Assembly (NCBI RefSeq): GCF_001194135.2
Contig: NC_068982.1
Span: 25,441,657-25,505,656 of the forward strand
Direction: 5' to 3'
DNA length: 64,000 bases
DNA from: Octopus bimaculoides
Taxonomy: Eukaryota
A program made the translations under genes and the position numbers. This document shows, one piece after another, positions 7,419 through 57,746 of the stretch. Positions within the stretch are counted from its first letter, which is position 1, and each line of letters starts with the position of its first letter. The notes under the pieces were generated by a model that searched no databases, had not been told where the DNA came from, and was given only the letters and a program-made list of their open reading frames with translations.

Positions 7419-7505
7419 NNNNNNNNNNNNNNNNNNNNNNNNNNNNNNNNNNNNNNNNNNNNNNNNNNNNNNNNNNNNNNNNNNNNNNNNNNNNNNNNNN
7501 NNNNN

Positions 7506-8805: not shown

Positions 8806-8809
8806 TACC

Positions 8810-8852
<43 letters not shown>

Positions 8853-9049
8853 GTGATAATAATAAAGATGATGACGACGAAGAAGAAGAAGAAGAAGAAG
8901 AAGAAGAAGAAGAAGAAGAAGAAGAAGAAGAAGAAGAAGAAGAAGAAGAAGAAGAAGAAGAAGAAGAAGAAGAAGAAGAAGAAGAAGAAGAAGAAGAAGA
9001 AGAAGAAGAAGAAGAAGAAGAAGAAGAAGAAGAAGAAGAAGAAGAAGAA
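8810..9049. repeat. Compound trinucleotide tract (AAT)n-(GAT)-(GAC)-(GAA)n
   Basis: Directly visible; source of the spurious poly-E/poly-K/poly-S/poly-L ORFs. Confidence 0.98.
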
Positions 9050-9691
9050 ATATTTTTAAAATAATCTTCCACACATCTTTTGTTCATTCCACTCATCCGA
9101 TATTTGACATTAACCATCTCAAGAACAAAATCTATCAACTCAATATATAATATCTACTTCCATTATTCACAATACATCTAATAACACAATAATCAGTTTA
9201 TTGCGTCTGACATCAATTAATTAAATAAGTTTTAAAACATATTTCATCATAATTACGACAATTATCGTAGTATTTATCTTGAGATTTTTTTTAATGTTCT
9301 GCAATCTACGTGATTACTTATTGTAGAAAATAACAATATTTGTAATATGAAAGTTCAACGTATCATAATTATGTACAGCCATCTAAGAAAGAAATACTTA
9401 CGAATCACTAATAGTTATAACTTAAATAGTAATAGATATATTACTATGAATGAATAAGAAAAAAATATATACGAATATATATGATATACTTATTTTCGGT
9501 TCTAAACTTTTCGAGATGAAGCCCTGCTGCTATAAACGAAGAAAAAAAAAAGAGATAATCAAGATACATCAGGAACATGACATGTTCTATCAAATGTTCC
9601 TTCATAACACTTAGATCAGTATTTCATTTAGGTTCAGCTTGAGGCTGCATTTCTCAATCAAATAATATTAATACGACGATGAAATTAAAGT

Positions 9692-18446: not shown

Positions 18447-21400
18447 TTATTATTATTATTATTATAATTATTATTATTATTATTATTATTATTATTGTTA
18501 TTAATATTAATATCATATAGACAGCGAGTTCTCAGAGTTCTTAGAGCGTCAGAAGAAATACTTTGCGTTGTAGCTTCGAGTTCTTTAAATTCTGAGTCCA
18601 AATCTCCGCGCAGACGTCATATTTGCCTTTCATCCATTCAGGGACGATAAAGTAATGTGCGATTGATAACGTAGCTGTTAGGGAGTCGCAGAAAATACTT
18701 TACAGTACCTGATCCAGTTTCTTTATGTTCTAGATTCGATTTGGATTCCGCTAATGTCAGCTTTGTCTTTCGTCTTCCCATGGGGAAAAAACAGTTGATG
18801 TAATATCCGGAGCCACAGTTTATATTCTTATGAGTCATGCATGTGATAATGTGCTCAACATCACCTTGACACCTACAATTGGAGAGAAGGTATGGTGTAT
18901 GCAGTGACTCAATCATTAACGTTCTGGTTTATGAAATTATCAATCATGATGCGGATATACACAATGAAGGTGACAACGGTGATGAAGATTGTGATGTAGA
19001 TGATAATGTTTTTTTTATGGAGGTGGATTGTGATGAGACGGCTTCATGAAAAGTGGCGGTGGAGGTGGAGGAGATGGTGTAAAAAGTAGGAAGGGCGGTA
19101 GGGTTGGTATATTGCTTTTGAAAAAGAAGGAAAGGAAAGCGAAAATCTCCAATATAAGCAAGCAACGGATATAACCGTTATTTCCAACATAGGCGCATTA
19201 TCACATATTTCTAAAATCGACCCACTCACTTCATCATAGAAAAAAATGGATAGCCATTTACGTGAGTCTGTGTAAGTATATGAAAAAAAGGAAACGAGAC
19301 AAAAAAAGTGCTTCATAAAATAGAATCAATTCTGGTGAGATAGGACGTAGAATATAACTAGAAACAGCCATGCATTATTATTCGGGGCTCTACTGATTCG
19401 GAAAAATTATGAAAATTTCCTCTGTATCGATACGCTCCTCCTCCCCCACACACAAAGTCACACAAATATTATACATACCTACACTCAAAGACAAATACAC
19501 CCATATGTATATATATATATACATACGTACACACATATATATATATATTATATATATATATTATATATATATATTATATATATACGTATATCAATATATA
19601 CATTTGTGCGTGTGTGAGTGTGTATGTTTCTGTTTGTGTGTGTGTATGTGTGTATATGTGTGTGCATTTGTGTGTGTGTATTAGAGAAAAAGATGAACAA
19701 ACGGAGAAATGGGCAATACTAATAGCTATGTTCAATTGAAAACAATGAGTTTAAAATGCACTCTATTTAAAACTAGTCGCTGATTTCACAGTTTCTTGCA
19801 TTGTCTGCAAGATAGTCATAAATATCGACATGGTGTAATTGAATTTTTTTTTTTTCTGAAAGACTTGGCATTTCTTAATAAAATTTAATTAAGTTCTCTC
19901 TGTTCGTAATATATATTTATATCTGTGCCAATTGTGGACTTCAAGCTACACTGATTATCCAAGCAATTATTTCAATAAGCCATCAAATTCATTTAAGTAT
20001 ATGGAAAACGACTAATTTAGAAAATGTTTCAATTTGAAATTTTATTTTATTCACCTTGATTTGTTAAACGATTGATAAGTTGGTATAGATTTAAATCCAA
20101 TTCTACTCTTCTACTAGTTTTACTCATTGGACTGAAACGATGCTGGGCCACAGCCTTCGACAAGTTTTGTCAGTCACGACATTTAATATTTCATTCTTGA
20201 AAGTATTTTATCAAATCGATAAATTTCACATTGTAGTTAGCTTGTTGGGCAGCAGATCTGTAACTGTATTTGGTTGCTTTTGTCTTTATTTAGATATTAA
20301 TGGCATATTTACTCTCCTTATCACAAGGACACAAATTATTGTTCTATTGACATAGTTTGACACTGAACAAGCAGAAATATGCTCAAACATTTTATAGTTT
20401 TGACGATGTTGTCTGTTTATTTTAACCAATATACTTTCTTTAACAAAGAAATGTCTTGAGCCTGTGTTAATTATTCGACCATATATGGAGCACAGTTCAC
20501 GCTGGTTGTAATTTGTTTGTGCAAGTTGATTCGTTAAGCTGAAACTTCTTTTAAACCATTACAGTCAGTTCAAATGACAAATATACACACATCGTACTTA
20601 CATCAGCTGTTACTTAAAACAGCTTGGATCTTAAACAAAGGCACTTTCTTGCAAGTCTGCAAGTCTTCAGCTCTTGTATGAAAGCATTACATCTAATGTT
20701 CATTTGCTCGTTGGGATTCACCAAAATATTAAATCAATAAATTAAATTATTTAGTCAGGTATATAGATTATNNNNNNNNNNNNNNNNNNNNNNNNNNNNN
20801 NNNNNNNNNNNNNNNNNNNNNNNNNNNNNNNNNNNNNNNNNTATACCACCATCTCTTTTTCAGTAATATAAATATAATTTTGTTAGCATATTCAATGAAG
20901 TAGTTATTAGTTTATTTATCTATTTAGAATGCAAATATTTCTGATAGGATATTATTTCTATAGTGTTAGATCACATTTACTGTAGGCAAATATTAGATAT
21001 AGCTGACACGGAAGCTAAAAGCTTCTATTTTGTCATTGAATATTACGATTATGTTCGCCTCCTTAGGGAAAAGAACATATAAGATCCTGTTATGCAGTTT
21101 GCATTAGCTTTATGGAAGAGGAAGATACACGTCCTTGACCGAAAACCATAAGCGATTAGGAAATGTTTTTCAATCAGAAAAATAAAACAGCAAATAAAGA
21201 TCGACATACAGGAAATTTCAATGATTTAACATTTTATGGAATCATAACTTTAGAACATTGAATGTTTTGCTAAATTTTGCTACGATTACGATTCGCCTTA
21301 AACAAGGAATTGTGAAGAAAGATATTGGTGAGAAGAAGAACCTAACGTGGATTACCTCTCTACAGGCACATTTACGTAGACTCAGGAAAAATATGGGACA

Positions 21401-24377: not shown

Positions 24378-24540
24378 GATGGCATAGTTGTGTGGTAAGA
24401 AGTTTGCTTTCCAACATTTTTTCATTTTCAAATCCATTGCGAGATACTGTAGATAGAGTCTTCTCCTATAGCTCCGAGCTGACCAAAGACTTGTAAATGG
24501 GTTTGGTAGACAGAAAGTAAAAGAAGCCCATCATATACGT
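24378..24540 (+). mobile_element. SINE family B, 5' half, diverged
   Basis: TTGTGTGGTAAGAAGTTTGCTTTCCAAC...CTATAGCTCCGAGCTGACCAAAGACTTGTAAATGGGTTTGGTAGACAGAAAGTAAAAGAAGCCC aligns with the reverse complement of 44550-44715. Confidence 0.8.
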
Positions 24541-28242: not shown

Positions 28243-28420
28243 NNNNNNNNNNNNNNNNNNNNNNNNNNNNNNNNNNNNNNNNNNNNNNNNNNNNNNNNNN
28301 NNNNNNNNNNNNNNNNNNNNNNNNNNNNNNNNNNNNNNNNNNNNNNNNNNNNNNNNNNNNNNNNNNNNNNNNNNNNNNNNNNNNNNNNNNNNNNNNNNNN
28401 NNNNNNNNNNNNNNNNNNNN

Positions 28421-29940: not shown

Positions 29941-32900
29941 AAAAATACATATTACTGGAATCATAGATAAGTCTGTCCGCTGCAAATATATGTTTCTTGG
30001 TTTCTTTTTATAATTTTAAATTATACCTAATAAATATAGTCGATTTCTAAAACTAAAAACAAAAAAAGAAAAAGAAAAGAAAAACCTGCTACCTGCGCTA
30101 TACATATGAATGATATTCTGAAAACTTGATGTCAGCCTTTCAAAAAAACCGTTCACTTTTCTACGGAACATAACACGGTGAGGTGACAGAAATCATTATT
30201 GGAATGATAACCCTTGAAGAAACATATTCTCCCATGGCTCGTCTCAATTCAGAAGTAGTCGGAGTAATGCTTACTTTAATACCCACTCTGATTCCAATTG
30301 GAAATTGGAAATTGCCTTACTAGTTAACATATTGGAAAATTTCATGCCCCGAGATCTTGGCTTCATGAACTAAGCCAGTTGCACTTTCCTTTTCACTCAA
30401 CATCTACAAGCACTGCTCGTTCAAACGCAATGTGAATAATGTTATCTGTAACCTGGATATGGGAATAATTTTTCTACTGTCTAAATTATCTCATACCTTT
30501 AAACATGCATGCACTCATACACACACAGACACAAAAGCAGACGTATTCATACATATACACACACATGTGTGTGTGTGTGTTGAGTATATGTGTGTGTTGT
30601 GTGTGTGTGCATGTGTGTGCATGTGTGCGCGTGTGTGTGCATGTGTGCGTGTGTGTGCATGTGTATGTATCTGCATGAGTGTGTGTGTACATATATACAT
30701 ATGTATATGAACGCACACGTATATATATGGATGTCATTATTCAGTTTTATTCCAAGATTTCTTGCCAATAGAGAAAGAGTCAGTTTCTAATATAGATCCA
30801 AGGCTCCAGTATGTGTGTGTATATGTTTGGTCCCCGCCACAGTGTCAGAAGCGGTATTGGTGTGTTTATGTCCCTGTAACGTAGGGTTTCGACAAAAGAA
30901 AATGATAAGTTATGTACCAGGCTTAAAATTATAAGTATTGGGGTAGGTTCATTTGCTTAAAAACCTTTCAATGTGGTGCCCCAGTATGGCTGCAGTCTAT
31001 TCAAACAAATAGCAGCAGTCGATTGAAACAAGTTTAAAAAATTAGGAGTAAATTTCTTGCGTTATTTCAGCAATTTTATCGGTTCATGACTAGTCATATA
31101 AATAATTAGTTTCAGTTTAAGTTAGATATAAATAGAAAGTAAAATTTGACCCCTAGAATATCAAAAGTAGTATTTTTATATATTCCGCACAAATGAAAGA
31201 AAAAATAGTTCGAATCCCAAGGTTTAACCCCAAGAAAGTATAGCTATATAGTAGCTATATATAGTTCTGTTATATTTACGTTTTCCTCAGTCAGCCTCTT
31301 TGAGATCACAACCATGTCTGGGATGCCTTCAGCGAAATCCACTGTTTTGAAACTTTATAGACGTCTCGAATCTGATGATAATTTTGATATCTTTATCCAT
31401 TACTTCTGTATGTGAAATGCGGTCGATTTTCCTCACGCCCTCTAACATTCTCGGATGAACAGAAAAAAAATTGCGTTCCTCTTTTTAATCTAAATTCATA
31501 ATAATAAAACACGAAGCACAGGTGTATCTGTGTGTTTAAGAAGTTCGCTTTGGAACGGATCGGTATTGATGTCCGTCCCATTGCTCGGTATCTTGTGCAA
31601 TGTCTTGTACAATAATCTTGGGCCAGGAAATATTTGTGAACAGGTTTGATAGCCGGAAATTGTACGGAAACTCGCGTTTACTATGTGTGTGTTTTGTTGC
31701 GCTTTGTCTCTCGATATTGGCTTGTCTGCATCCCCGAAAATTAATGATTCAATAAAGACAGAATGTTACAATAATTACCAGACTTTAAAATAATCACTGT
31801 AATCGATCTTATGGGCTAGAAATATTAAGGTGCTACACCAGCAGAGTAGTAGTCTTAAGGCTGAGACAAGTAACATTAGAAAATATAATGCCTTGATATT
31901 TCTGATTTATTAAACATTGAACATACTTCTAAAATAACGTAAATCTACAGTTATTAGAAAAAAGAATAAGTTTTCAAAATGTAAAGTCACGTGAACTCAA
32001 CAAAATGAAAGTTCGACAAACTTCCAAATCTCAAGTGAGTAATACAAATCGGTGCCAAGAAACACTATTGCTTTAATAAGAGACGGAGAGAAGCCAATTA
32101 GAATCTCATTGATATGATATATATATAGGCTGCTTATCTATTCTTCGTTTTCTTTCGCTTTTTGTTTTTGTTTCCTTTTTTTGCTTTCTTCCTCTTTAAC
32201 TGACAGCATTGATAGGACTATCAAATAATCCGGTTCAAAAATAATCACGTGAACAATATCTACAGAATCTTCTACTGCCTCAGATTTATTTCCTTTATTT
32301 TCACAATCACAGTAAAAATAATATTTTGTTGTACAGAATACATTGAATGAATCTGCGTTCTTGTCTATTGAATATAAGCTTTAGCAAACGACTCCAAGAG
32401 AGGATTTACTCCAGTGACTTAGAAGTAAGTTGTCTGCATTATTTCTTGTTTCATTACATTTCCTGATTTATTTTACACAATAGTACATTTAATATGATTT
32501 CATTAGTTGTATTGTTCAGATTATTCAATAATGAAAATAATATTTAATTAAAATTATCACAAACGGTTATTTAATTAATACATTTGTTTACGACAAAAAC
32601 AGCTTTCATAAACAAATCTACATTAGAAATTTCTATATTAGTTTGTTTATTGATTTAGTTTTCGAGTAAATATAAATAAAACATCCAAATTTCAGGAAAA
32701 TTGTTCATTTGCTTTCTGAAAAATATCGTTTTGGTCCTGATTCTGTGTTCTTCTATAGGTCATAAATAATTCAATATGAGTTTTGAAATTATAAAATAAC
32801 TGTACTGACTAATTTAATTTTATTCATATATTTTAAGTTTTGTAATGTTATAAGCTAAACTATTTTCAAATAAATAGATAAACGCACTTATACACACAAG

Positions 32901-33639
32901 CATGCATATATATNNNNNNNNNNNNNNNNNNNNNNNNNNNNNNNNNNNNNNNNNNNNNNNNNNNNNNNNNNNNNNNNNNNNNNNNNNNNNNNNNNNNNNN
33001 NNNNNNNNNNNNNNNNNNNNNNNNNNNNNNNNNNNNNNNNNNNNNNNNNNNNNNNNNNNNNNNNNNNNNNNNNNNNNNNNNNNNNNNNNNNNNNNNNNNN
33101 NNNNNNNNNNNNNNNNNNNNNNNNNNNNNNNNNNNNNNNNNNNNNNNNNNNNNNNNNNNNNNNNNNNNNNNNNNNNNNNNNNNNNNNNNNNNNNNNNNNN
33201 NNNNNNNNNNNNNNNNNNNNNNNNNNNNNNNNNNNNNNNNNNNNNNNNNNNNNNNNNNNNNNNNNNNNNNNNNNNNNNNNNNNNNNNNNNNNNNNNNNNN
33301 NNNNNNNNNNNNNNNNNNNNNNNNNNNNNNNNNNNNNNNNNNNNNNNNNNNNNNNNNNNNNNNNNNNNNNNNNNNNNNNNNNNNNNNNNNNNNNNNNNNN
33401 NNNNNNNNNNNNNNNNNNNNNNNNNNNNNNNNNNNNNNNNNNNNNNNNNNNNNNNNNNNNNNNNNNNNNNNNNNNNNNNNNNNNNNNNNNNNNNNNNNNN
33501 NNNNNNNNNNNNNNNNNNNNNNNNNNNNNNNNNNNNNNNNNNNNNNNNNNNNNNNNNNNNNNNNNNNNNNNNNNNNNNNNNNNNNNNNNNNNNNNNNNNN
33601 NNNNNNNNNNNNNNNNNNNNNNNNNNNNNNNNNNNNNNN

Positions 33640-35569: not shown

Positions 35570-35644
<75 letters not shown>

Positions 35645-35984
35645 AAATCGTTATTCTGCTAACAACATAATAGAGTACAATATAAAGTTTTACCCTGTGC
35701 TATCCAGTAGTAGTATTATACGTACTTCCAGGTTTGCTTTGGGCATTTGTTGTGTGGGAATAGATAATTGAAAAAATTGGAGTCAACGAGGAGTACGATT
35801 GGACATTTATTTTTTAATCGCTGCAATTGTTTCCACGCAACGCAGTTCACGAAGCATGCAAGTACTTGTTTATACCACTGATTCCTTGCATTATGAGATC
35901 TAGTTCTGTTTCCTCAGTCGATTTGTAAATATTGTCTCCGTAAGTTCAAAATCCTCGGTTTCAACAACATCTCTGTCTGTCGTG

Positions 35985-37276
35985 TAATGTGTAATTAATT
36001 CAAATGAGTAAAATTTGTCGGCAAAATAAGTTTAAGACCGTACCAACATTATTTTGTTTGAATTGAGAATTCACGGCACAAATGATCAATGAACAAAAAT
36101 TTATTAGTCGTATTTAGTTTCATAGCTATTATTTTCAATTACAGCCTTACAACGGCAGGATATGGAGTTCGACAAATGAGCACAGAAATCACCTGAAATG
36201 TTCTGCTATTTTTCTGCGATAAAATTATATAACTGGGACAAATTTGTTAGTTTTTTAGTATGAACTCTTTTTGAAACATAATTCCATAAATTTTGTATCG
36301 GATTCAAATCCGGGCTCTGCGGAGGCCACTCAATAACCACCAAATTATTGCGCTAAAAATATTTCAAAACTTGCCTAGTCTTATGAAAAAGGCAATTGTC
36401 CTGCTGGAAAATAGATCCCGATGGCATCTGATTTTTTACATATGGCAGCACATTTTCATATACTAATTGCAGATAGCCTACATTGTTCACTCTGCCATCA
36501 ACCGTAACAACTGGACCCGTACCTAAGCTGCTGAACGCGGCCCACGGCATAACCCCTCACCTGCCGCTTGCGCTGTTTTCTTGACACTTAGAATGGAATT
36601 CTTAAGTTGGACGGCGCCTAACATAAATCTTTCCGTCTAATTCAAAGATGCAGAAGTGGGATTCGTCGCTCCAAAGTACTTTTGACCAGTTTTCAGCTGC
36701 TCATTCAGTATGACTTTTAGCTAACTTGATCCCCTTCCACCGGTTCGTCTCAGAAATTATCAGCTTCTCTCGAGCGATACGGCTGAACAGTCCACATTCT
36801 TTTAGGGGGTTTCTGACAGTTTGTGGTGTAAAACTGTTGTCAGTTTCATGAGATAATTGCTTGCAAATGTCCACTGCTGTTAGCATTCGGTTACCCTCAG
36901 AGAGTCTATGAATTCGCCGATCCATCTGTACTGTTGTTTTTCTCGGAGCGCCTGTTCTTTGTCGATATTTGTATTGACCAGTGACTTGATAAAGCTTCCC
37001 TACTTGAACCCAAGGCGTCTTGCTGTATCCTAATTGCTTGCTCATGAAGGACACATTTTGCTGTTGAAGCAATGCGATCTTTAATCTAGTAACTGGGCTG
37101 ATACCAGACGCTTTTCCATAGCGAATTAATGTGTAACTGCTCGATTATTAAATAAAACAATGCAGTACGACAAGCCATATGACCACACATTTGGCTTATC
37201 AATTTGCATAATCTTGGTATGGTCTTAAACTAATTTTGCCGACAATTTCTAATCATTTGAATTAATTTCACATTAA
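35985..37276 (-). mobile_element. Tc1-like DNA transposon, near full length, with ~55-60-bp imperfect TIRs
   Basis: Left AATTAATTCAAATGAGTAAAATTTGTCGGCAAAATAAGTTTAAGACCGTAC versus right reverse complement AATTAATTCAAATGATTAGAAATTGTCGGCAAAATTAGTTTAAGACCATAC; these enclose a transposase pseudogene. Confidence 0.88.
36104..37119 (-). pseudogene. Tc1 transposase pseudogene (DD34E, with E mutated to Q)
   Basis: HTH region (...RTGAPRKTT..MDRRI), WSKVLWSDESHF, GVMPWAAFS, FQQDN, EWPPQSPDLNPIQNLW, ending ...YETKYD*. Contains stops and frameshifts. Confidence 0.93.
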
Positions 37277-37811: not shown

Positions 37812-37848
<37 letters not shown>

Positions 37849-40319
37849 ACTTTTTATATGTATGTATACATATGAAAAGTTATTTAAGTGAAATAACAAC
37901 TGACAATTAGCTTAGAAGCTAATTTTTTAAATCGTGAATATTTTTTTATACACCAGAATGCATAATTCCAATCAAAAAGCTTTTATCCTAATATTGTGTG
38001 AGAGTTGTTTTTCAATCATAATTTAATTTTTGTAATATTCATTTTCGTTCTTGTAAGTGTTACTTAAATCACAAACATAGATTTATATTTCAAAAAAAAA
38101 AATATGACAAAAGGAAAACGTTCATAGCGTGGTAGAGTCTCCTGAACAAACGTGACATATAAGATATATGTTATTCTTGTTCCTTTTGAAGATTTGCTTA
38201 ACATTTATGAGCAGGGATGAAATTGTCGGGAGAAATGAGAAGGAAAGACTGGACATAGTTTCTATTGTGGTGATTCATGAATTAGACATCATGAGCGATA
38301 AGAGAATAAGAGTTAAATGAGAATGTATAAGTGGGTTAGCATTATCTGACAGCGTCGCAGAAGAGAAAGGCTCATTAAAGTAGTGGTAAAAAATAGAAAG
38401 AAGATGCGTTTCACCAGTAAACTAAAGGTTGGAGCGTATCTGAGATTTACTTTAGGTAGTCAGCGCTTTTATGGATGTGGTCTAGGATATCTCGGTTTGT
38501 AGCAGCTGTACCGTCCAGGTTTCAGATATTACTCTACTGTAGCCCTCGCCTGAGCATTGGGTAGTATCAATAGTTATTGGGATCTGATGTATCTCCTGAT
38601 TATGAACGATTGTAACAATGTGAACAATATGTGTGTGCTTGTTTGTGCTTGAGAATATATATACCTATATGTAAACGGGGTGAACTACATCCATCTATAC
38701 AAAATTAAGAGCATCTGAGCTACGTAAACCTCAGAATTCAACACCACACCATATTTTGTGTATTGTCTTGGCTGTTTGTGACGGATAGGTGATCTCACCT
38801 ATTTCTATTAGAATAGAAACTCAGCGAAAACAATGTTTTCTTCATACCATACTTTGTATGACAGACACAAACACCAATAACCAATATATTAAAAATCAGA
38901 ATAGACAGAAAATAATGCTACGGATAGATGAAAGTACCATTTGGAATGGAAGGATTCAAGGTGCATGTTGTAAATGATAAACAATTGGAAGCTTGACTTT
39001 ATGCAATACAGGTATATACTAAAAGTATATGAGAAATCGTGCCAGAAAACGAGTTGAGGCAAGCTTAAAAAGAAGAAATTAATTAAGAACATTCATGTCA
39101 AGTTGGTTAATTATAGATTGATAAATGGACCGAAAACTGACTAACACATTCTTACAAATCAATAATATATACCGATCACAACTAAAATTAAACATTAGGG
39201 CCTAATGTCTTATATGAATTATACTTAAATATAAAACAGAATTTTTTTTTATCGAGTTATAGGAATGAGCTCTCTATTTCTCCAAATAAAATTCAAAACA
39301 TTCTCAACTCGATGGATAATGTAGGAACAAGAGGTGACAGAAGAAAAAGAAAAATAATGATAATGTTTAGAATATACCATACAGAATTCGAGAGATAAAA
39401 TAATTGTTTTGTACGAATTCAGGAAGATAGTTGCCTAAGATAACTAGGAAGCTAATATCAATTCTAGAACTACAAATTACGTGTAACGAAGATCAAGCCA
39501 AAACTGCTACGATTAGTTATCAAACACGAGCAAAACAAAACAAAAATGTGTTTACTGCATTCAGATAATCAAAAACAGCACAGCAATGACTGACTGAGAT
39601 AAGAAAGAGAGAACTGAAATTAATGAAAAATGTCAAAAGTAGGCTTGCAATGGTGATACATTATGCAAACTTAAAACAATTGCTTGAGACGCTGAAAGAG
39701 TATTAGAGCACCGAATACATTGCTTTCGGTCAATCATTCTCTTTCTCTATTCTCAAAGTCAAAATACCACCGAGATCACCAATGACGCAAATCATATTGT
39801 TGTCAATAATTTTTCTGTTCATTTAGGATCGCTCCCTTTCTCTATATTTTTGCCTTTCTCTCAGCGTTTTGCCGAAATCATCTGTAGACAAGCCTAGAGT
39901 GAGATGGGCTCAATCAGGTTCAAAACTACCCAAGACACACCGGATGTCACAATGTTAATCTCTATGACACCGTTATGGATTAAAGACACAAGATAGATTT
40001 CCACGTGAAAAATACATAAAATAATGGACAGGGGTTAAGAGGAAGATTCCGACCTGAGGGAGAAGTGTCCTCAATTTCAGTAGATCTTCAAAGATTTATT
40101 ATAATCTGTACGTAGAGCAGTAGATTAGATCAAGTAAACGCTGAATGTACGGGTGCAAAACAATTAACCATATTGATATTGGCACCGTAATCTCACCCAA
40201 CCAACAAAAAATGCATCTACAAACATGAAAGAGAGATGAGGGTTCATTTACTGGGGACTGTGTTAGGATTATCAACTAATAAGAGAGAAGGGCATTATAT
40301 AAATACAACAAAGATACCC

Positions 40320-44548: not shown

Positions 44549-44715
44549 TACGACGGGCTTCTTTCAGTTTCCGTCTACCAAATCCACTCACAAGGGTTTG
44601 GTCGGCCCGAGGCTAAAGTAGAAGACACCTGCCCAAGGTACCACGAAGTGGGACTGAACCCGGAACCATGTGGTTGGTAAGCAAGCTACTTATCACACAG
44701 ACACTCCTGTGCCTG
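44296..44715 (-). mobile_element. SINE family B, young full bipartite copy with internal (CA)n(TA)n
   Basis: Minus-strand head AGGCACAGGAGTGTCTGTGTGATAAGTAG...GGTTCAGTCCC (A/B-box-like), body ...GGATTTGGTAGACGGAAACTGAAAGAAGCCCGTCG, microsatellite, then 3' half ...GGTGCTCCAGCATGGCCGCTG. Confidence 0.9.
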
Positions 44716-45295
44716 ATAAATATGTTTAAGATTTGAACATAAGAAATTATAAGTAGGACTTAAGGACGTGTCGTTTAAATAATGAATATTTAGTGCATTT
44801 TTTGCTGATTTTTCTATTTTTCTATCACAAAGCAGTNNNNNNNNNNNNNNNNNNNNNNNNNNNNNNNNNNNNNNNNNNNNNNNNNNNNNNNNNNNNNNNN
44901 NNNNNNNNNNNNNNNNNNNNNNNNNNNNNNNNNNNNNNNNNNNNNNNNNNNNNNNNNNNNNNNNNNNNNNNNNNNNNNNNNNNNNNNNNNNNNNNNNNNN
45001 NNNNNNNNNNNNNNNNNNNNNNNNNNNNNNNNNNNNNNNNNNNNNNNNNNNNNNNNNNNNNNNNNNNNNNNNNNNNNNNNNNNNNNNNNNNNNNNNNNNN
45101 NNNNNNNNNNNNNNNNNNNNNNNNNNNNNNNNNNNNNNNNNNNNNNNNNNNNNNNNNNNNNNNNNNNNNNNNNNNNNNNNNNNNNNNNNNNNNNNNNNNN
45201 NNNNNNNNNNNNNNNNNNNNNNNNNNNNNNNNNNNNNNNNNNNNNNNNNNNNNNNNNNNNNNNNNNNNNNNNNNNNNNNNNNNNNNNNNNNNNNN

Positions 45296-47948: not shown

Positions 47949-48157
47949 NNNNNNNNNNNNNNNNNNNNNNNNNNNNNNNNNNNNNNNNNNNNNNNNNNNN
48001 NNNNNNNNNNNNNNNNNNNNNNNNNNNNNNNNNNNNNNNNNNNNNNNNNNNNNNNNNNNNNNNNNNNNNNNNNNNNNNNNNNNNNNNNNNNNNNNNNNNN
48101 NNNNNNNNNNNNNNNNNNNNNNNNNNNNNNNNNNNNNNNNNNNNNNNNNNNNNNNNN

Positions 48158-48312
48158 TACAACGGGTTTCTTTCAGTTTCCGTCTACCAAATCCACTCAC
48201 ACGACTTTTGTCGGCCCGAAGCTATAGGAGAAGACACTTGCCCAAGGTGCTATACAGTGGGACGGAACCTGGAACCATGTGGTTGGTAAGCAAGCTACTT
48301 ACCACACAGCCA
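48158..48312 (-). mobile_element. SINE family B 5' half; its internal microsatellite runs into the gap
   Basis: Closely matches 44550-44700. Confidence 0.9.
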
Positions 48313-48703: not shown

Positions 48704-50575
48704 TTTCCTTTAATGAGCGTTTTTGTAGATATGGACACAACAGATTCGGTTTCGGCCTATAATGCTCTGTTGACCTGAAATCCCTGTGTTGCAATGAACA
48801 GAGATAACTTTGTTTTCCTACAGTGCCTCATTATATAATTTTTCTCACCTTATAACCGCAAAAGCAATAACTCAAGTAAATAAAAACACAATATAATTAC
48901 GACTGATGGGAAAATATTTCCTGTTTTAATATAGCATCCAGGAAGAACATGAATATTGATGTAACACGACGTTTATTTGTAATCAATACATTATTCTCAA
49001 ATTACGGTAGATGTAATTCATATTCCGACAGCAAAAACAAAAAAATCAACTCTATGGAAAAGTAAGAATTGCGAAGAAACGCAATTTCGTTACATAGGAA
49101 AATTATAACTTAAATATATTTCAAATTAAAGTGATGACAACTTTATCTGGAGATCATAAAAATAGTTATATCTCAATAACAAAATACTAACACTTAATCT
49201 ACTGTATGTTTTTTGTTGAATCTAAGTTTTACGATTTTCGAGTATCATGTAATTTCTTAACTTTTGATGGAAATAATGTATTCGTGGATTAAAATTTAGA
49301 AGTATTTATGTTATAATTTCTGCAGTACTTCGTCTGGAAATATGCCTGTAGAAAATGTTCGGTAAAATTCAACAAATGTTGAGGCTTTAATTGGCTTTGT
49401 AACGTTTTCCTATTAGAGAACTAGCCTACTATAAATGCTCTCCATGTACCTCGCTTAAAGTACACTGGCATTTACAGATATTACTCCACCTGCGAGCCCA
49501 GGAATAAAGTGACACTTATCTGCCGTGTTTTGTATGACTTAGGATGAACACCAAATATTTCAGAATGGATTTCACTAGTAATTTCTCTAAATCTATGCAG
49601 ACACTTCTAAATATATTGCACAAAGCTTCCCAATTTCGTTAAACCCAACATCATAACGTTTAACTATTAATGTGCCTTAAAGATGAAGGATTACTAATGT
49701 TCCACAATTTTTACAACACATTATTTTTCGTCTGGAATAAGTGACGTAGGTTAACCTTTTAATTCTACTTAACGAAAAAACACAAATACTTGGCTAATCT
49801 AGATGCAAACTTTCCCAAAGTAAGATGAATTTTATTAATATTACTGCCTATGTAAAGTAGCGAGATGGCAGAGTCGTTAGCGAGCTGCGCAAATTGGTGA
49901 ACGTCAGTTCGTCCATCTTTGCGTTCCAGGTTCAAATGCCACATGGGTCGACTTTGCTTTTCATCGTCTCGGAGGTCGATAAAATAAGTTCTAGTTGAGC
50001 AATGGATTTGATTTTAGCGACTTTCCTCTGAAATTGCTGGCCTTGTGCCAAAATTTGAACTCAGTATGATTAACTATGTAAGAATATATATCCTGATTTC
50101 GGTGGAATATTGAACTAGATAGTAGTTTCGGCAAATTTCTAGCTTTACCTTTAAATTCATATTTCAACTGAATTTATGGTATCAGAAGTAAATGGCAAAT
50201 TGTGCCTTTTGGTGAAGAACTATTTGTGAAATTGTGTTGACATTAATAATAAAAGTGCTTGCAAAACTTAAATGAAACCTATTTAAACTATAATAATTTT
50301 TAATAAAGACAACATATCACTTTTGTAAAGGAACTGTAATTCTATACGCTTATATTCCGTTACTATTAGGTGAAAGAAAGACAAAGTCAGTCAGCGTTCG
50401 ATCAGGATTTGCGCTCAAAATATTAAAAAAAAAAGGCATTCAGACTCAATGCTTGCGTCATGAATCAGGTCTGAATATGAATTTATATATGTGTAATATA
50501 TGAATACCTTTAATTCATTTAGATGTTTTGCTGATTTTTTTCTTTTTTCAGGAGGAAAACGGCACGAGTACAGAT

Positions 50576-50818
50576 ATGATGAAGACTTTAATTATACCGA
50601 TACTGCTCAGTCTGTTATTTATCACAGACTGTAATGCTTACTATAGCAGCTACAGTAATTTGCCATATCCAGTCAACCGACAAAACAAGCAAAATTACAA
50701 TTGTAACAACTGCTTCAAGATACGAAACCTTTGCCGTGAGAACTACATGCCTTTCTGGTTTTGCCATGAAACACACTCCAGTTGCTACTATCGCTTCTGC
50801 TATCATTATAAAACGTAA
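50576..50818 (+). CDS. Small secreted Cys/Tyr-rich peptide precursor (signal peptide plus 6-Cys domain); coding part of exon 50552-50814
   Basis: Polypyrimidine tract plus CAG acceptor at 50549-50551, ATGATG at 50576, and donor AC|GTAAGT at 50815. Translation: MMKTLIIPILLSLLFITDCNA|YYSSYSNLPYPVNRQNKQNYNCNNCFKIRNLCRENYMPFWFCHETHSSCYYRFCYHYKT. The sequence is non-repetitive and more GC-rich than its flanks. Confidence 0.72.
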   Translation: MMKTLIIPILLSLLFITDCNAYYSSYSNLPYPVNRQNKQNYNCNNCFKIRNLCRENYMPFWFCHETHSSCYYRFCYHYKT

Positions 50819-51672
50819 GTAAAGTAATAATTCGTTTTTCAGACACATCAGAAACCAATGTAAAATAAATTTGAGCAACAGAGTCACTGCATGGAATTGA
50901 AGTAGATTTCTATCACTTGCTCTAGTAACGAGGTGAATGACACAAAGACCAGTTGTGATGTACGCGTCAGTATGTGCCTTTGTGCACACATGTGTGTATG
51001 TATTGATGTGCATTGAAGTGTGCGTGTTGAAGCGTGTTTGTTTGGGGAGTGTATATCAAGCCACTGCGATCTTCAGGCGAGAATACACACATACGTATAA
51101 ATGTTTCCATCTAAATGCCTCCAGCGTGAAACTCTCTATTCGTGAGGCAAAAATTCATTTTCAATAAGTTTACGTGTGTTTGTGCCTGTGTATGTCTATG
51201 TATGTAACCCCGAAAAATGACAGAATAGTCATTCCTGTAAGACCTTTCAATATAGGTCTGGTGGACGGCTGGAAAGACATCGCTCTAAACTCCAGTAACA
51301 ATGTTTTTACCAAAATAATTTCTACAGTTATATTAATTCAACACAAAGAAAAGATAGATGTGTATAATATCATTAGACTGAATTATATGTAGACCCTCTA
51401 TATTTAAGTTTATATGTAAATATTATAGGTTGTAAACACAATTCTGTGATAAATGGATTCGATTGCTTCACCTACTTTATTATCTCTTCGCTATGTATCG
51501 ATGAGCGAAGGCGCGTTGCATATTGGTCAGCGGGTATTCGACACACAATAATAAGGTAGTGAGTTCGAATACTTGCACCACGTTGTACCCTTGGGGAAGA
51601 CACTCTACATCATGTTGCAACAGTCTATTCAGCAGGAAAAAATGAGTTGTATCTGTAATTCAAAGGACCAGC

Positions 51673-51715
<43 letters not shown>

Positions 51716-51768
51716 NNNNNNNNNNNNNNNNNNNNNNNNNNNNNNNNNNNNNNNNNNNNNNNNNNNNN

Positions 51769-51848
<80 letters not shown>

Positions 51849-51877
51849 GAGATGGTGATTTATTATCAATTACAACC

Positions 51878-52453
51878 TAAAGGCAATATTAATAGCGGTC
51901 ACAAAAGTGACGGAGGCTGTTGGCTAGCATCGCTTATGCTAAAATAAGAGTTAAATTTACAACCACTAAAGCACTTTACTTAATGATTGCCAAGGTGAAG
52001 TAAGTCCCTGGCGTATACAGCCGTATCGCGATTTCGAATTTTGGTGTAGACCATCTTAACTCTCATCAGCGGCTTTTAACACCTATGATTAAGCTCATCT
52101 TCCTTTGTCAATCTTATAAGTAAAACCGTTGAAAACATGTGCTGATTTTCAAAACGGTAAATTAAAACAAATTAAATGAGTGGCTTATTAGCAAGTAGAA
52201 CCTAAAGACAAAATTAATAGTGACGGAGGGTACTGACTAGCACCTCTTATGCAAAACTAACAGTTAAATTAACTCTTTGGAGTTAATTTAACTGAAGCCA
52301 CTGAAGCACCATACAAGGTAAGTCCTTATTGTATATAGCCGTATCGCGATTTCCTCCACCCTTTGCCAGTCATTAAATGTAGTGGTTTAGTGGCTTTGGA
52401 GTTAATTTTACAGTACTCTCCGTCACTCTTGTGACCTATTAATTTTGCCTTTA
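51878..52453. mobile_element. MITE-like element with long imperfect TIRs and an internal third copy of the terminal module
   Basis: Left end TAAAGGCAATATTAATAGCGGTCACAAAAGTGACGGAG; right end reverse complement TAAAGGCAAAATTAATAGGTCACAAGAGTGACGGAG; internal direct copy at 52203. Confidence 0.7.
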
Positions 52454-52454
52454 T

Positions 52455-52495
<41 letters not shown>

Positions 52496-52671
52496 CAGGT
52501 TAGCTGAGTTAGAGGTTAAAATAACCGTCTAAGGGATGTAAGTTTCCATTGTATTACCGGTGTATTACCTATATTTAAACATGGGCAAACATGTTATGCT
52601 CATAAATTATAGGTAAGGACAGATAAAAAAATAGGAGTCAAGATTTAAAGAAAACAGAAAATGGAGATATT

Positions 52672-53131
52672 ATAGAAATATTAATATTTCTAAGTCTCTC
52701 TAAAGGAGACTACGGCAGCGGTACAGGATATTAATAGTTATCGCCAGGCCAACATGGTAATCCAAAAAATAGAACGAATGCTGCTGTTGATTAGCTCCAA
52801 GAGGCCATTGCCTCTAGCTACCTATGTGACACACGAATCTGTGTCCATTATAACCTTCGAACAGGGGAGGTCAGCCACTTCCCCTTGCTGGTCTGGCATC
52901 TACAGACTAGTTTCGAGTTATTGCCTCTTATCAATGTAGAGTGGCCGAACCCAGCAGGCGTCACTACTGACCGTCTGTACGAAGGATTATGTTCCTAAAT
53001 TCAGTGGAATACATCCACTGGTTTTCAAAAATAGAAACATTAATATTTCTAAGTCTCTCTAAAGGAGACTACGGCAACAGTACTGGATATTAATAGTTAT
53101 CGCCAAGCCAACATGGCAGTCCCAAAAATAG
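52672..53131. repeat. 359-bp unit bounded by 101-bp direct repeats (52672-52772 and 53031-53131)
   Basis: The two copies of ATAGAAA.ATTAATATTTCTAAGTCTCTCTAAAGGAGACTACGGCA...AAAAATAG differ at 8 positions. Confidence 0.92.
52899..52940 (-). ncRNA. Degenerate minimal type I hammerhead ribozyme
   Basis: Minus strand: TCTACA (stem I) TTGATAA (CUGAUGA core with 2 transitions) GAG-GCAATAA-CTC (stem II) GAA ACTAGT (palindromic stem III) C, then TGTAGA (stem I'). Confidence 0.6.
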
Positions 53132-53863
53132 GACTTAGAAATAATAATAATTCTATTTTTCATTTTGATTTCATTCTACTGTATCTTTAGTTTATTTTGT
53201 ATTTTCCTAAACGACTTCGGACCCCTTACAACATATATATATNNNNNNNNNNNNNNNNNNNNNNNNNNNNNNNNNNNNNNNNNNNNNNNNNNNNNNNNNN
53301 NNNNNNNNNNNNNNNNNNNNNNNNNNNNNNNNNNNNNNNNNNNNNNNNNNNNNNNNNNNNNNNNNNNNNNNNNNNNNNNNNNNNNNNNNNNNNNNNNNNN
53401 NNNNNNNNNNNNNNNNNNNNNNNNNNNNNNNNNNNNNNNNNNNNNNNNNNNNNNNNNNNNNNNNNNNNNNNNNNNNNNNNNNNNNNNNNNNNNNNNNNNN
53501 NNNNNNNNNNNNNNNNNNNNNNNNNNNNNNNNNNNNNNNNNNNNNNNNNNNNNNNNNNNNNNNNNNNNNNNNNNNNNNNNNNNNNNNNNNNNNNNNNNNN
53601 NNNNNNNNNNNNNNNNNNNNNNNNNNNNNNNNNNNNNNNNNNNNNNNNNNNNNNNNNNNNNNNNNNNNNNNNNNNNNNNNNNNNNNNNNNNNNNNNNNNN
53701 NNNNNNNNNNNNNNNNNNNNNNNNNNNNNNNNNNNNNNNNNNNNNNNNNNNNNNNNNNNNNNNNNNNNNNNNNNNNNNNNNNNNNNNNNNNNNNNNNNNN
53801 NNNNNNNNNNNNNNNNNNNNNNNNNNNNNNNNNNNNNNNNNNNNNNNNNNNNNNNNNNNNNNN

Positions 53864-53894
<31 letters not shown>

Positions 53895-54189
53895 TGTATA
53901 TATTTGTGTCAATGTTTGTCTGAATCAGGCATACATCTACTTGGAACTGACAGTAAAGAAATGCTGAGAAAAGCACAAAGAAATCTTGTGCATTTTAAGA
54001 GCGGTGATGAGAGCATTTGCCTTGACCAGAAATGTACTGAAAACACAAACGAACAGCATTCTGCATGCATGTCTCTTCTATATAACCGTCATGTCTGCAC
54101 GCTTAAATACAAGCAAGTCATAGGTTTCTGCAAAGAAAAAAAGGACAACGAGAGGCCATGGCTGAAAAAGAAAATGGAGTGACCCATGC

Positions 54190-54365
54190 TAGGAATAAGT
54201 TTGTGGGACGATATTCGAAACGAGATAATTCTATAACGTCATCTAATGTGAATGTTATTGCCACGTAATACCGAAAGCATAAGTTCCGCCAGATCAGATA
54301 TGGTCTAAAGGTAAAGACGTGCAGGAAGAGACTACTCAGAAGGCCTCCAAGATGATGGGAAAATA
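54190..54365 (+). mobile_element. Decayed RTE-like LINE C-terminal fragment
   Basis: GISLWDDIRNEIIL resembles the RTE 'GI(S/T)L.D.IRNE.IR' motif. Confidence 0.4.
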
Positions 54366-55196
54366 ACACAAACTTTTCAGGCTGAAATGGAAAAGATGAG
54401 AGCAATCGAACAAATACTTGAGGCGTATCGTGAATAAGAACATCTGATAGTCTGTTCGATAGTGTAATAGAGCAACATCATCCCTCCATTCTTTTACCAG
54501 CTGCTATTATACAGAAATTCAGATAAAAACCGTACAATGTTTTCAAACCTACTTATTTAAGTATTGTATTTTTCATGGAAAAATAGATTGCGTATTTATG
54601 TATTCATTCCTCGGTTTTATATAATTCTCGGAATTGTCAAATTAAGATCGTAATTAATCCTTACTCATGATCACCTTCAGAATATAAAATGTATTTGATC
54701 GATCAGATTGCGTCATTCATATTAGCATTAGAAACAATGCTTACACATTTGAATTAATGGAAAGTTTTACAAATGACAAACAACTTTGTTTTCCATCAAT
54801 CACCATGAAGAGCAAAAACGTCTACTTAATTTGTATTTAAGACGACGTGCTTTTATTTCGAAAAAAATAATAACATATAATTATGCGCATAGACATTTGT
54901 CCTATACTGACATGTGTAATCAATCATAATTTACTGCCATAGGATAAAAGGCCAAGAGGACATAGTGCTATCCTGTAAAGAGGAGGATACGTAGTTCGCA
55001 TTCTCTTATGATCATCTCAAAATTGCTTTAATTTTTAATGATTCCTTTGGGTAATCTTTTAATAGCTATAATATTGAAACCTAGACTAATGCAATATTCA
55101 GTTATCTCACTCCTAAACGACAGTAACTTCTCTTAAATCGTTTTTGTATTTACTTGCTAAATTTAGTTGAAGAAATCATGGATCATAGTCTATTAT

Positions 55197-55433
55197 TTAT
55201 TCCTTTATTGCCTACAGAGGGCTAAACTTAGAGGGGACAAACAAGGACAGACAAAGGGATTATTAAGTCGATTACATCGACCCCAGTGTGTAACTGGTAC
55301 TTATTTAATCAACCCCGAAAGGATGAAAGGTAAAGTCCACCTCAGCGGAATTTGAACTCAGAACATAACGGCAGACGAAGTACCGCTAAGCATTTCGCCC
55401 GGCGTGCTACCGATTCTGCCAGCTCGCCACCCT
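55197..55433 (-). mobile_element. SINE family A, full-length young copy with 14-bp TSD
   Basis: Reverse complement of the 62593-62820 sequence. TCATAGTCTATTAT flanks both ends (55183-55196 and 55434-55447). Confidence 0.93.
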
Positions 55434-55703
55434 TCATAGTCTATTATCAATACTACACTTTCCCATGGATAAGACACTTACTCTCTCGATCTATACATGA
55501 ACCATTAAAGTAGTGCTAGATAGCAGTCTAATACGTTTTTTGATAATTGTCTCGGATCAAACAGACATTTAAGAAACGCTTGGGCGTGATCGAAAATTTA
55601 CATAGCTGAAGTAGCGTCTTTCAAATGTGTAACCTATAGTTTGTTAGAAGCAGCGTATTATAGATCTTGAATAGTTTTGGCCTGGAGGTCAAAGGGAAAT
55701 ACA

Positions 55704-55748
55704 TGAGCAATATTTGGTGCATATTATATATACACCAAATATTGCTCA
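55704..55748. repeat. 16-bp perfect inverted repeat with 13-nt AT loop
   Basis: TGAGCAATATTTGGTG ... CACCAAATATTGCTCA. Confidence 0.9.
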
Positions 55749-57746
55749 GAAACTTTTCATGATAAGAAATCAAGAAGCATATCCATTGTACTTGCCCTTG
55801 AGTAATTATCGGTTATGATTTTATGCTATAGCAATCACTTTATCAATCAATCAAATTCATTTATCAATTTTCATTTATCTAGCCGATGTTATATAACATA
55901 AATCAATAAATCTCATTTCCTAATCTAGTGAATATGTGATCAACTACATTATCTTCGAAATAGTACTTCAACTCGTTATAAGTGAGCTTTGATTGTTGTT
56001 GTTGTTGTCGCTGTTGCTGCTGCCGCTGTTGTTGGTGTTGTTTAGCCACATGAAAACTCGATTGAGCAGATCTGAAAAAATAACATAAATGTCATCCTCA
56101 CGTTTTATTTTAACAATAGCTTTGATTACATAAGAAAGGCCTATAACACAGACTAGTTCAAATGTAAAGTAAACACGATTGCAACAATAATGGACCATCA
56201 TTAAATATCGCTACTAAAAACAACAGCTATATTTCATTTTGTAGTGTAGTAACCAGTAATTTTATTAGAGCACCGTTGTATATAATTAATCTGCAGTTTA
56301 TCTCTTCGAAAAAATTATGACTTATAGTTTAGTCTTGGGTATTTTTAATATGCTCTTAATATTCTCACAATCACAAAGGCTGGTATGACTAAATAATTTG
56401 TTGCATTTATTCTGGTACTTATAGAATATATTATAAACCTTAGAATTATACAATATTGTAGGGCGGCTAACTGGCAAAATCGTTATCTCACTATGCAAAG
56501 GCTTAGCAGCATTTCTCAAGTTCGGAGTTCAAATTTTGTCGAGGTCGAATTTGTCTATCATTGATGAAATGAGTACCAGTTAACACTAGGGTGGATTTTA
56601 TCGACCTTCCCCTCCTCCGAAATTGCTGGCCTTGTGCCAAAACTTGAACCCAGTATTATATCATTTTCTAAATATGTTAGATCAAATTTATACATGTTGC
56701 CGATATGAACTCAGGGAATAGTTGTTGGGACTAAATAACATTTATCTTTTAATCAATGATCTACATTTCTAACACTATTTTTACTTTTGTCAACTAAAAA
56801 AGTTTTCTAAATTTATTTTGATTCACATTACTTTAAGAACCTGATGAAAAAATGTCAAGAAGATCTCTTTCTTTTTTTTCCTTTTTTTATTTTTTCCACA
56901 TGATGCGAATAATCTATTGCATAAAACTGAAATTGAAACGTATATTTACATTTCAGAAATGATTGGTCTGAGAATGCGCTACCACTCAAAAGAACTCATC
57001 AGAATGAATCAAATCCAGATTTACTCGCTTAGTGAATATAATAAAATCAAACATCATACTGACAACCATGATGAAATAGAGTGTGAAGAAAAGGTCATGG
57101 AATATCATTTGAGCTTTGATAATTTATCCATTAAGTCAATATGCAGACAGAAATTTACATTATTTTTCTTCATTAATTTCTGTATTTTTCTTTCTTCATT
57201 AATTTGTTTCTTCTTTTCTTTTTTCCTTTTTCTTTTTTTTTGGGGGGGGGGATATTCGTCTATACAAATGGTCTGATGCTAAAAGTTTACCTAATGCTAA
57301 ACTATTTTCTTAAGAGAAAATGTCTGTTTGTTTAGTCATATGATAATTAGAATCTTTAATATTAATAAGATCAAGCAATCTATATGACGCCAATCAGCAA
57401 ACACATACACACATACACACATACACACACAGGCATATGAGCATGTGTCCGCTGCTACAAGACATGTAAATCTGAATCCATCTATTTACTGATGCTTTAA
57501 CATATTTTGTACTAACGCTATCGTATTCTATTTACTTATACACTTTACATTTTTAGAGAAAATTTTAATTTTAATTATATTATGTAATTCTAAAATTTCT
57601 GTATGCTTCATGATAACATTTTTGACGTTCATATGATATGCTACTAATATTGCTAAGAATTCTATCTCAATGTATCGCTAGCAAACACGTTGTACATTTC
57701 AGAACAGGTTTTATTCATTTTTTATTATATATTTTCTCTTCCACAG

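Follow-up and report, generated by a model that had tools for sequence, protein, structure and literature searches.

A conserved six-cysteine secreted-peptide gene in octopods: exon structure, evolutionary constraint and a possible role as a prohormone-like signalling precursor

Introduction

The subject of this report is a gene for a small, cysteine-rich and apparently secreted peptide in the genome of Octopus bimaculoides. It lies in a stretch of 64,000 nucleotides (nt) of the forward strand (NCBI RefSeq assembly GCF_001194135.2, contig NC_068982.1, positions 25,441,657 to 25,505,656). This whole stretch is called the window below, and positions are counted from its first letter. An earlier note on the same DNA, made from its letters without database searches, had flagged the exon at 50552-50814 as part of an orphan gene for a secreted, tyrosine-rich peptide with six cysteines, and had taken it for the only exon in 64 kb that credibly codes for a host protein. 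Here, we follow up that exon by sequence searches, by comparison with a second octopod (Argonauta hians) and by structure prediction.

We find that a real, conserved secreted-peptide gene, with the structure proposed below, is very probably present in the window. It would have two coding exons and encode a precursor with a signal peptide, a six-cysteine peptide, a dibasic site and a short C-terminal peptide. We describe the gene and the evidence for its conservation, weigh at each step the explanations that compete with it, and then turn to what the peptide might do.

Structure of the gene

The flagged exon is bounded by an acceptor (...ttttttcag|GAGG) and a donor (AAAAC|GTAAGT), with a phase-2 intron after it. 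On the forward strand it carries an open reading frame (ORF) of 80 codons that runs from the ATG at 50576 to a TAA at 50816-50818 and translates as MMKTLIIPILLSLLFITDCNA|YYSSYSNLPYPVNRQNKQNYNCNNCFKIRNLCRENYMPFWFCHETHSSCYYRFCYHYKT; the TAA overlaps the GTAAGT of the donor. The window is AT-rich, with microsatellites, assembly gaps and fragments of transposable elements (TEs), and ORFs of about 80 codons are common in it, so the length of this frame proves nothing by itself.

The first 21 residues of the frame include a lysine at position 3 and a hydrophobic core of 13 residues with a mean Kyte-Doolittle value of 2.7-2.9 (by inspection). The residues at -3 and -1 of the predicted cleavage site are small in both species (C-N-A in the window, S-S-A in Argonauta hians). 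Judged by inspection and by its evolutionary pattern, this leader is signal-like. The 59 residues after the predicted cleavage site include 10 tyrosines, and the cysteines are spaced C-x2-C-x6-C-x9-C-x6-C-x4-C.

Two further candidate coding regions at this exon were considered and rejected. Acceptor and ATG are separated by 24 nt in the window but by only 20 nt in Argonauta. This 4-nt difference would put an upstream frame in a different phase in the two species, which indicates that the stretch before the ATG is noncoding and that MMK is the start; a coding exon upstream of MMK is ruled out on the same ground. A minus-strand ORF of 132 residues (50615-51013), which overlaps the exon, is likewise ruled out, as stops interrupt it in Argonauta.

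The orthologue was found in two protein searches. A word-indexed search of 5.8 billion protein clusters (E<=10) returned a sole match, the Argonauta hians hypothetical protein Ahia01_000555300 (P0001; E = 2e-39). When phmmer was run with the 59-residue mature part against 1.84 billion representatives (E<=0.001), the same protein was again the only one returned (E = 9e-30, 88% identity). The window peptide and the Argonauta protein are 79% identical overall and 88% identical in the mature part (52 of 59 residues), and all six cysteines are identical. The Argonauta gene lies in a locus of 21 kb (GCA_054771915.1, contig BAAFZT010000027.1), called L001 where positions in it are given. The surroundings of the donor, TATAAAACGTAAGTAAAG, are identical in the window and in Argonauta, the acceptor is arranged in the same way, and the Argonauta gene model uses the same AAAAC|GTAAGT splice. 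The donor, the phase-2 intron, the second coding exon, the Lys-Arg (KR) site and the NES sequon are all kept, as is an upstream block with CCAAT and TATA boxes in the same order and orientation. Unlike the window gene, the Argonauta model begins at an additional upstream ATG (MKEYN-) that is absent from the window; its intron is much shorter (Table 1) and its final 6-7 residues differ. The Argonauta protein is uncharacterised and carries no information on function.

No Octopus orthologue was returned by either protein search, although Octopus proteins are present in those databases; the gene is therefore absent from the searched octopod protein sets except that of A. hians. In an exact-sequence look-up of the 80-residue ORF product in public assemblies, no called gene was on record. 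As far as predicted-protein databases (rather than genomes) show, the gene appears to be restricted to one lineage, the Octopoda. When a second copy was sought by tblastn in the 64-kb window and in the 21-kb Argonauta locus, none was found.

Starting from the Argonauta model, blastn and tblastn located another coding exon at 56957-57032, some 6.1 kb past the first one. It adds NDWSENALPL-KR-THQNESNPDLLA and brings the precursor to 104 residues (105 from the shared MMK in Argonauta), so the mature region is probably longer than 59 residues. The acceptor of this exon (atttcag|A) is conserved, in both species no frame but the spliced one is open, and the frames of the two species end within one codon of each other. 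Up to residue 98, the two species differ at 13 nucleotides of this exon, eight of them in third codon positions. The window shares the stretch DWS.NALPLKRT.QNES with Argonauta. It contains the dibasic site Lys91-Arg92 (56988-56993) and an N-glycosylation sequon, NES, at 57003-57011, which Argonauta also keeps. Cross-species conservation thus shows a predicted structure with two coding exons. The precursor would be laid out as a signal peptide of 21 residues, a peptide of 69 residues, Lys-Arg and a C-terminal peptide of 12 residues that includes the sequon. The 69-residue product has 10 Tyr, 11 Asn, 6 Cys and 6 Ser, with an isoelectric point (pI) of about 8.6. Downstream of the stop, conservation with Argonauta extends past the candidate poly(A) signal, so that the 3' untranslated region (UTR) may be longer than this signal implies.

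These results bear on several claims of the earlier note. The 263-nt exon with its acceptor and donor was correctly delimited (50552-50814; ttttttcag and GTAAGT), and Argonauta has the orthologous exon. Inspection also bears out the 21-residue leader (Lys3, hydrophobic core, C-N-A), the spacing of the six cysteines and the 10 tyrosines in 59 residues. The cysteine framework is also conserved in a related species, with all six cysteines and 52 of 59 residues identical in Argonauta. The claim that the 64 kb contain no other credible coding exon of the host proved incorrect, since the exon at 56957-57032 belongs to the same gene and continues its frame.

Table 1. Features of the peptide gene and runs of N in the window
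Feature	Position	Strand	Details
Candidate promoter and start of noncoding first exon	31971-32254	+	78% identity over 290 nt with L001 814-1095
Putative noncoding exon 1	32150-32424	+	Transcription start guessed about 30 nt past the TATA box; GTAAGT donor from 32425
Exon 2 (first coding exon)	50552-50814	+	263 nt; 5' UTR 50552-50575, coding sequence 50576-50814
Predicted signal peptide, 21 residues, MMKTLIIPILLSLLFITDCNA	50576-50638	+	Hydrophobic core; fast evolution next to invariant mature start
Tyr/Asn-rich N-terminal arm (YYSSYSNLPYP...) and six-Cys core C43...C75	50639-50814	+	88% identity with Argonauta
Intron, phase 2, GTAAGT...tttcag	50815-56956	+	6.1 kb; about 0.6 kb in Argonauta; contains gaps and microsatellites
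Exon 3, coding part: (T)NDWSENALPLKRTHQNESNPDLLA, stop TAG 57030-57032	56957-57032	+	80% nt identity with the Argonauta exon
AATAAA, candidate poly(A) signal	57040-57045	+	8 nt past the stop; of little weight in AT-rich DNA
N runs 1-5	2321-2835, 7419-7505, 14829-14887, 20772-20841, 28243-28420
N runs 6-10	32914-33639, 44837-45295, 47949-48157, 51716-51768, 53243-53863

Selection and coding pattern

The window gene and its Argonauta orthologue were compared as one pair by the Nei-Gojobori method, which gives the proportions of nonsynonymous (pN) and synonymous (pS) differences. The predicted signal peptide evolves fast (pN 0.31, pS 0.82). In the mature part within the first coding exon, pN is 0.054 and pS 0.78; in the Cys core the values are 0.031 and 0.88, and in residues 81-98, encoded by the second coding exon, they are 0.094 and 0.77. 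Third codon positions hold 21 of the 30 nucleotide differences in the mature part (6, 3 and 21 at the three positions; binomial P = 4e-5), and the only ORF frame of the first coding exon that is open in both species is that of the peptide. Identity with Argonauta is 0.78 in the coding sequence as against 0.61-0.63, the background level, in the flanking intron. The residues directly after the predicted cleavage site are invariant, and the N-terminal arm YYSSYSNLPYP is fully conserved. The gene is under strong purifying selection: synonymous sites are saturated, and the protein is almost frozen. The saturation of synonymous sites points to a deep divergence of the two lineages. For the Argonauta-Octopus split, the paper on the A. 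hians genome uses a fossil minimum of about 29 Ma (PMC12682272).

This pattern decides against the explanation that the frame is a chance ORF or a piece of a TE rather than part of a host gene. Such an origin might be suspected in an AT-rich window with microsatellites, gaps and TE fragments, where ORFs of this length are common. It is nevertheless scarcely conceivable here, given the coding substitution pattern, the strong constraint, the lack of further copies in the window or the Argonauta locus, the order kept with the upstream block and the downstream exon, and the lack of any Pfam or TE-domain match. We regard the chance-ORF and TE explanations as effectively excluded.

The same comparison bears on the second coding exon. 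It might be argued that the intron is retained, that the product is the 80-residue peptide ending ...CYHYKT at the TAA of 50816-50818, and that the block 56957-57032 is conserved as a 3' UTR or as a regulatory element. In line with this, the in-frame TAA over the donor is kept in both species (L001 10256-10258 in Argonauta) and would end translation of any intron-retaining transcript. However, any GTAAGT donor in phase 2 creates a stop at this place, and its conservation may be a mere by-product of the donor consensus. Moreover, the downstream block begins exactly at a conserved polypyrimidine-AG acceptor, and only the spliced frame is open through it in both species; its third-position differences and its low pN relative to pS, both given above, are those of a coding exon. 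We therefore consider retention of the intron very unlikely as an account of the conserved block. An intron-retaining transcript, where it occurred, would give an 80-residue product with the full Cys core and no C-terminal tail.

Candidate promoter and first exon

The first coding exon has an acceptor and a noncoding stretch before its ATG, which implies a noncoding exon further upstream. A candidate for its beginning is the block at 31971-32254. This block occurs once in the window and once in the Argonauta locus, with identical order and orientation relative to the gene. The first coding exon follows it after 18.6 kb in the window and after 9.2 kb in Argonauta. The block contains a CCAAT box at 32094-32098 (GCCAATTAG) and, 27 nt later, the TATA sequence TATATATAGG at 32120-32129; E-box-like CACGTGAAC motifs occur at 31988-31996 and 32246-32254. 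Both species have a GTAAGT downstream of the TATA box, at a distance of 305 nt in the window and 297 nt in Argonauta (L001 1259). The block is probably the promoter of the peptide gene, but it could be another conserved regulatory element instead.

Four of the N runs in the window fall in the putative first intron and two between the coding exons, and small features there could be hidden.

Family, fold and comparison with known systems

Searches for a known family returned nothing of substance. In Pfam-A (hmmscan, E<=10) the 104-residue precursor gave a spurious match to Herpes_UL43 only (E 0.3) and the Argonauta protein gave nothing; the profiles of the CHH/ITP, eclosion hormone and insulin families were not matched in this search. 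A two-sequence profile compared with PDB sequences retrieved only spurious matches to antibody Fab CH1 domains (E>0.2). AlphaFold2, run with the two-sequence alignment, gave a mean predicted local distance difference test (pLDDT) of 43 for the 104-residue precursor and of 54 for the 69-residue mature peptide, with 64-71 in the Cys core. In the model of the mature peptide, three short helices are weakly predicted over the Cys core, at residues 22-34, 39-45 and 51-54. Foldseek returned 0 matches for the 69-residue model in the PDB, a result that is uninformative given the low confidence of the model. None of the papers searched contains the peptide strings, and the literature on the octopus neuropeptidome and on six-cysteine peptides yielded nothing matching.

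On these grounds, the peptide appears to be a new family in the familiar class of small, secreted, disulfide-rich peptides. This agrees with the earlier note, which had found no described family for the framework: Pfam has none, the matches to PDB sequences are spurious only and Foldseek gives 0. A hit to a transposon, which the note would have taken as a refutation, was not obtained: the sequence is single copy in the window and in L001 and has no TE domain or Pfam match. The note had further seen a resemblance to Aplysia attractin, which is supported by nothing beyond a weak helical prediction of low confidence.

Among the closest parallels are cysteine-rich invertebrate hormones. The layout of CHH/ITP, eclosion hormone and insulin-related precursors resembles that predicted for the octopod precursor: a signal peptide, a six-cysteine peptide of 60-75 residues, a dibasic site and a C-terminal peptide. 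As is the case for such hormones, the octopod gene is under strong purifying selection and has no nearby second copy. Unlike them, it has no amidation signal, and it gives no profile or phmmer match to these families. To our knowledge, the spacing C-x2-C-x6-C-x9-C-x6-C-x4-C fits none of the three.

Attractin is also a secreted mollusc peptide of similar size with six cysteines and two C-x6-C intervals. It is a water-borne, helical pheromone with three disulfides, whereas helices are only weakly predicted in the octopod peptide; the other cysteine spacings differ, and there is no match in sequence, profile or PDB sequences. The conserved heptapeptide motif of attractin is absent from the octopod peptide as well. 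The likeness is an analogy at most.

A prohormone survey across molluscs (De Oliveira et al. 2019, PMC6425005) describes PXRX, a proneuropeptide family with cysteines that is restricted to conchiferan molluscs and resembles no other neuropeptides. It is defined by a P[FM]R[WY] motif and has four conserved cysteines. The octopod peptide likewise has a Pro-aromatic motif (MPFWF). Membership was ruled out by comparison with the description of the family (PMC6425005), as the octopod peptide has six cysteines rather than four and its PFWF lacks the Arg.

Possible function

What might such a peptide do? The best overall reading, and one that may well hold, is that it is an octopod-restricted, prohormone-like signalling peptide. 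Peptide-hormone precursors usually consist of a signal peptide, a cysteine-rich peptide, a dibasic site and a C-terminal peptide. In the octopod gene a fast-evolving predicted signal peptide, an invariant mature start, a fixed six-cysteine core, a dibasic site, strong constraint and the lack of a nearby copy together make up the pattern of a precursor of a peptide hormone, neuropeptide or pheromone. The specific function of a signalling ligand (neuropeptide, hormone or pheromone) is put forward tentatively.

In outline, signal peptidase would cut after Ala21, and the six-cysteine core would form three disulfides in the endoplasmic reticulum, possibly as a short helical bundle. A prohormone convertase would then cut at Lys91-Arg92 and a carboxypeptidase would remove the two basic residues, leaving a basic peptide of about 8.6 kDa. 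This product would be released as an extracellular ligand and bind a specific receptor; such binding would account for the near-frozen residues of the core. A stronger version of this proposal is possible but rather doubtful: the peptide would be an octopod-specific, ultra-conserved hormone or pheromone with an undescribed six-cysteine framework and fold and an orphan receptor, overlooked in other octopod annotations.

Several points weigh against a signalling precursor. An amidation signal is lacking, as no Gly precedes the KR, and neither Pfam nor phmmer searches link the peptide to a known hormone family. A lone KR may also be left uncleaved. A structural or adhesive protein that forms cross-links could have the same basic composition, rich in Tyr, Cys and Asn. 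Neither AlphaFold2 model reaches a confidence at which a fold could be assigned. Only two species are involved: the constraint is derived from one pairwise comparison, and the taxonomic range from protein databases rather than genomes. Lastly, the annotation of A. hians was made with GINGER, which draws on RNA-seq (brain, eyes, heart and embryo), homology and ab initio prediction, and a model from such a mixed-evidence pipeline is not by itself proof of transcription or splicing (PMC12682272).

The composition just mentioned leads to the main competing explanation, namely a structural or adhesive matrix protein in which Tyr (as DOPA or dityrosine) and thiols would be cross-linked, for example in the cement of egg strings or egg cases, the lining of suckers, or the matrix of the beak or radula. 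The content of Tyr, Asn, Cys and Ser in the 69-residue product and its basic pI are what one would look for in such a protein, and the arm YYSSYSNLPYP is rich in Tyr, Pro and Ser and fully conserved. A familiar example is mussel foot protein 6 (mfp-6), a basic, Tyr- and Cys-rich protein of the adhesive plaque. Like the octopod peptide, it is small and secreted, with ~15-20% Tyr and ~10% Cys. The likeness is compositional only, however, with no similarity in sequence; the octopod peptide has a fixed, conserved cysteine framework and a dibasic site. Low-complexity structural proteins usually tolerate substitution and changes of length and are often repetitive or multi-copy; in contrast, the core of the octopod peptide is near-invariant (pN 0.031 with saturated pS), with no internal repeats and no nearby second copy. 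The conserved dibasic site also goes against this role, and cysteines that are even in number and fixed in their spacing are more suggestive of disulfides than of free thiols. A structural or adhesive role is a serious alternative, less consistent with the residue-by-residue conservation than a prohormone-like signalling peptide, and we consider it unlikely.

The other alternative is a venom or salivary toxin, made in the posterior salivary gland, or an antimicrobial host-defence peptide, acting on the ion channels of prey or on microbial membranes. In favour, cephalopod salivary glands are known to secrete novel peptides, and the octopod product is small and basic, with six cysteines and a predicted signal peptide, and falls outside known families. 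Venom and antimicrobial peptide genes are typically multi-copy, however, often in tandem families, and combine conserved signal peptides with fast-evolving, hypervariable mature regions. Here, the mature peptide is strongly constrained and the signal peptide is the faster part, the reverse of the usual pattern for toxins and antimicrobial peptides; neither the 64-kb window nor the 21-kb Argonauta locus contains a tandem family, and the peptide strings are absent from the literature searched. The earlier note had proposed a lineage-specific secreted effector, with venom, salivary and antimicrobial roles among its examples. Of this, the orphan, secreted and cysteine-rich character stands (with one octopod match), while the venom or salivary and antimicrobial roles fit poorly because pN is about 0.03-0.05 with saturated pS, no second copy is found and Lys-Arg is conserved. 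These roles fit worst of those considered and are quite improbable.

Other features of the window

The remainder of the window holds repeats and decayed elements. A fragment of a Tc1/mariner-type transposase lies at 36701-37072 on the minus strand (Pfam HTH_Tnp_Tc3_2, E = 1e-11), and its best relative is a Tc1-like protein of Octopus bimaculoides with 70% identity. Two segments of the Argonauta locus, L001 2534-2595 and 3065-3143, match window positions 37832-37893 and 35570-35648, which flank the transposase fragment, in inverted orientation. This suggests that the same TE family is present in Argonauta. A dispersed repeat of ~90-110 nt (72-88% identity) occurs in the window at 24423-24532 (+), 44551-44645 (-) and 48162-48250 (-), and in Argonauta at L001 7784-7895 and 18724-18762. 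It is probably an element common to octopods that resembles a short interspersed nuclear element (SINE).

An ORF of 180 residues at 8051-8593 (-) shows a weak match to a CCHC zinc knuckle (E = 0.097) and may represent the decayed gag of a retroelement; no homologue was returned from the databases at E<=1e-5. A trinucleotide tract at 8587-9138 reads as poly-Ser on one strand and as poly-Glu/Asn on the other, and it gives rise to artefactual ORFs of 139-183 residues. The ten runs of N (Table 1) total 2977 nt and mostly lie beside di- and tetranucleotide microsatellites (AC/TG, AT, GTAT). They are assembly gaps or masked repeats.

Significance

Cephalopods have many lineage-specific genes, whose nervous, sensory and reproductive roles are largely obscure, and the peptide gene described here is a concrete and well-delimited case. 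It has a new cysteine framework that is near-frozen between two octopod lineages whose synonymous sites are saturated. It also illustrates that short, two-exon peptide genes with long introns still escape genome annotation. Taken by itself, the gene adds one more taxonomically restricted secreted peptide, unsurprising in kind, as such peptides are common. If the stronger version of the signalling proposal, with its orphan receptor, is true, the gene would represent a lineage-specific signalling system that arose and was fixed within the octopus lineage. The gene may also offer a new ligand family for molluscan endocrinology or chemical communication.

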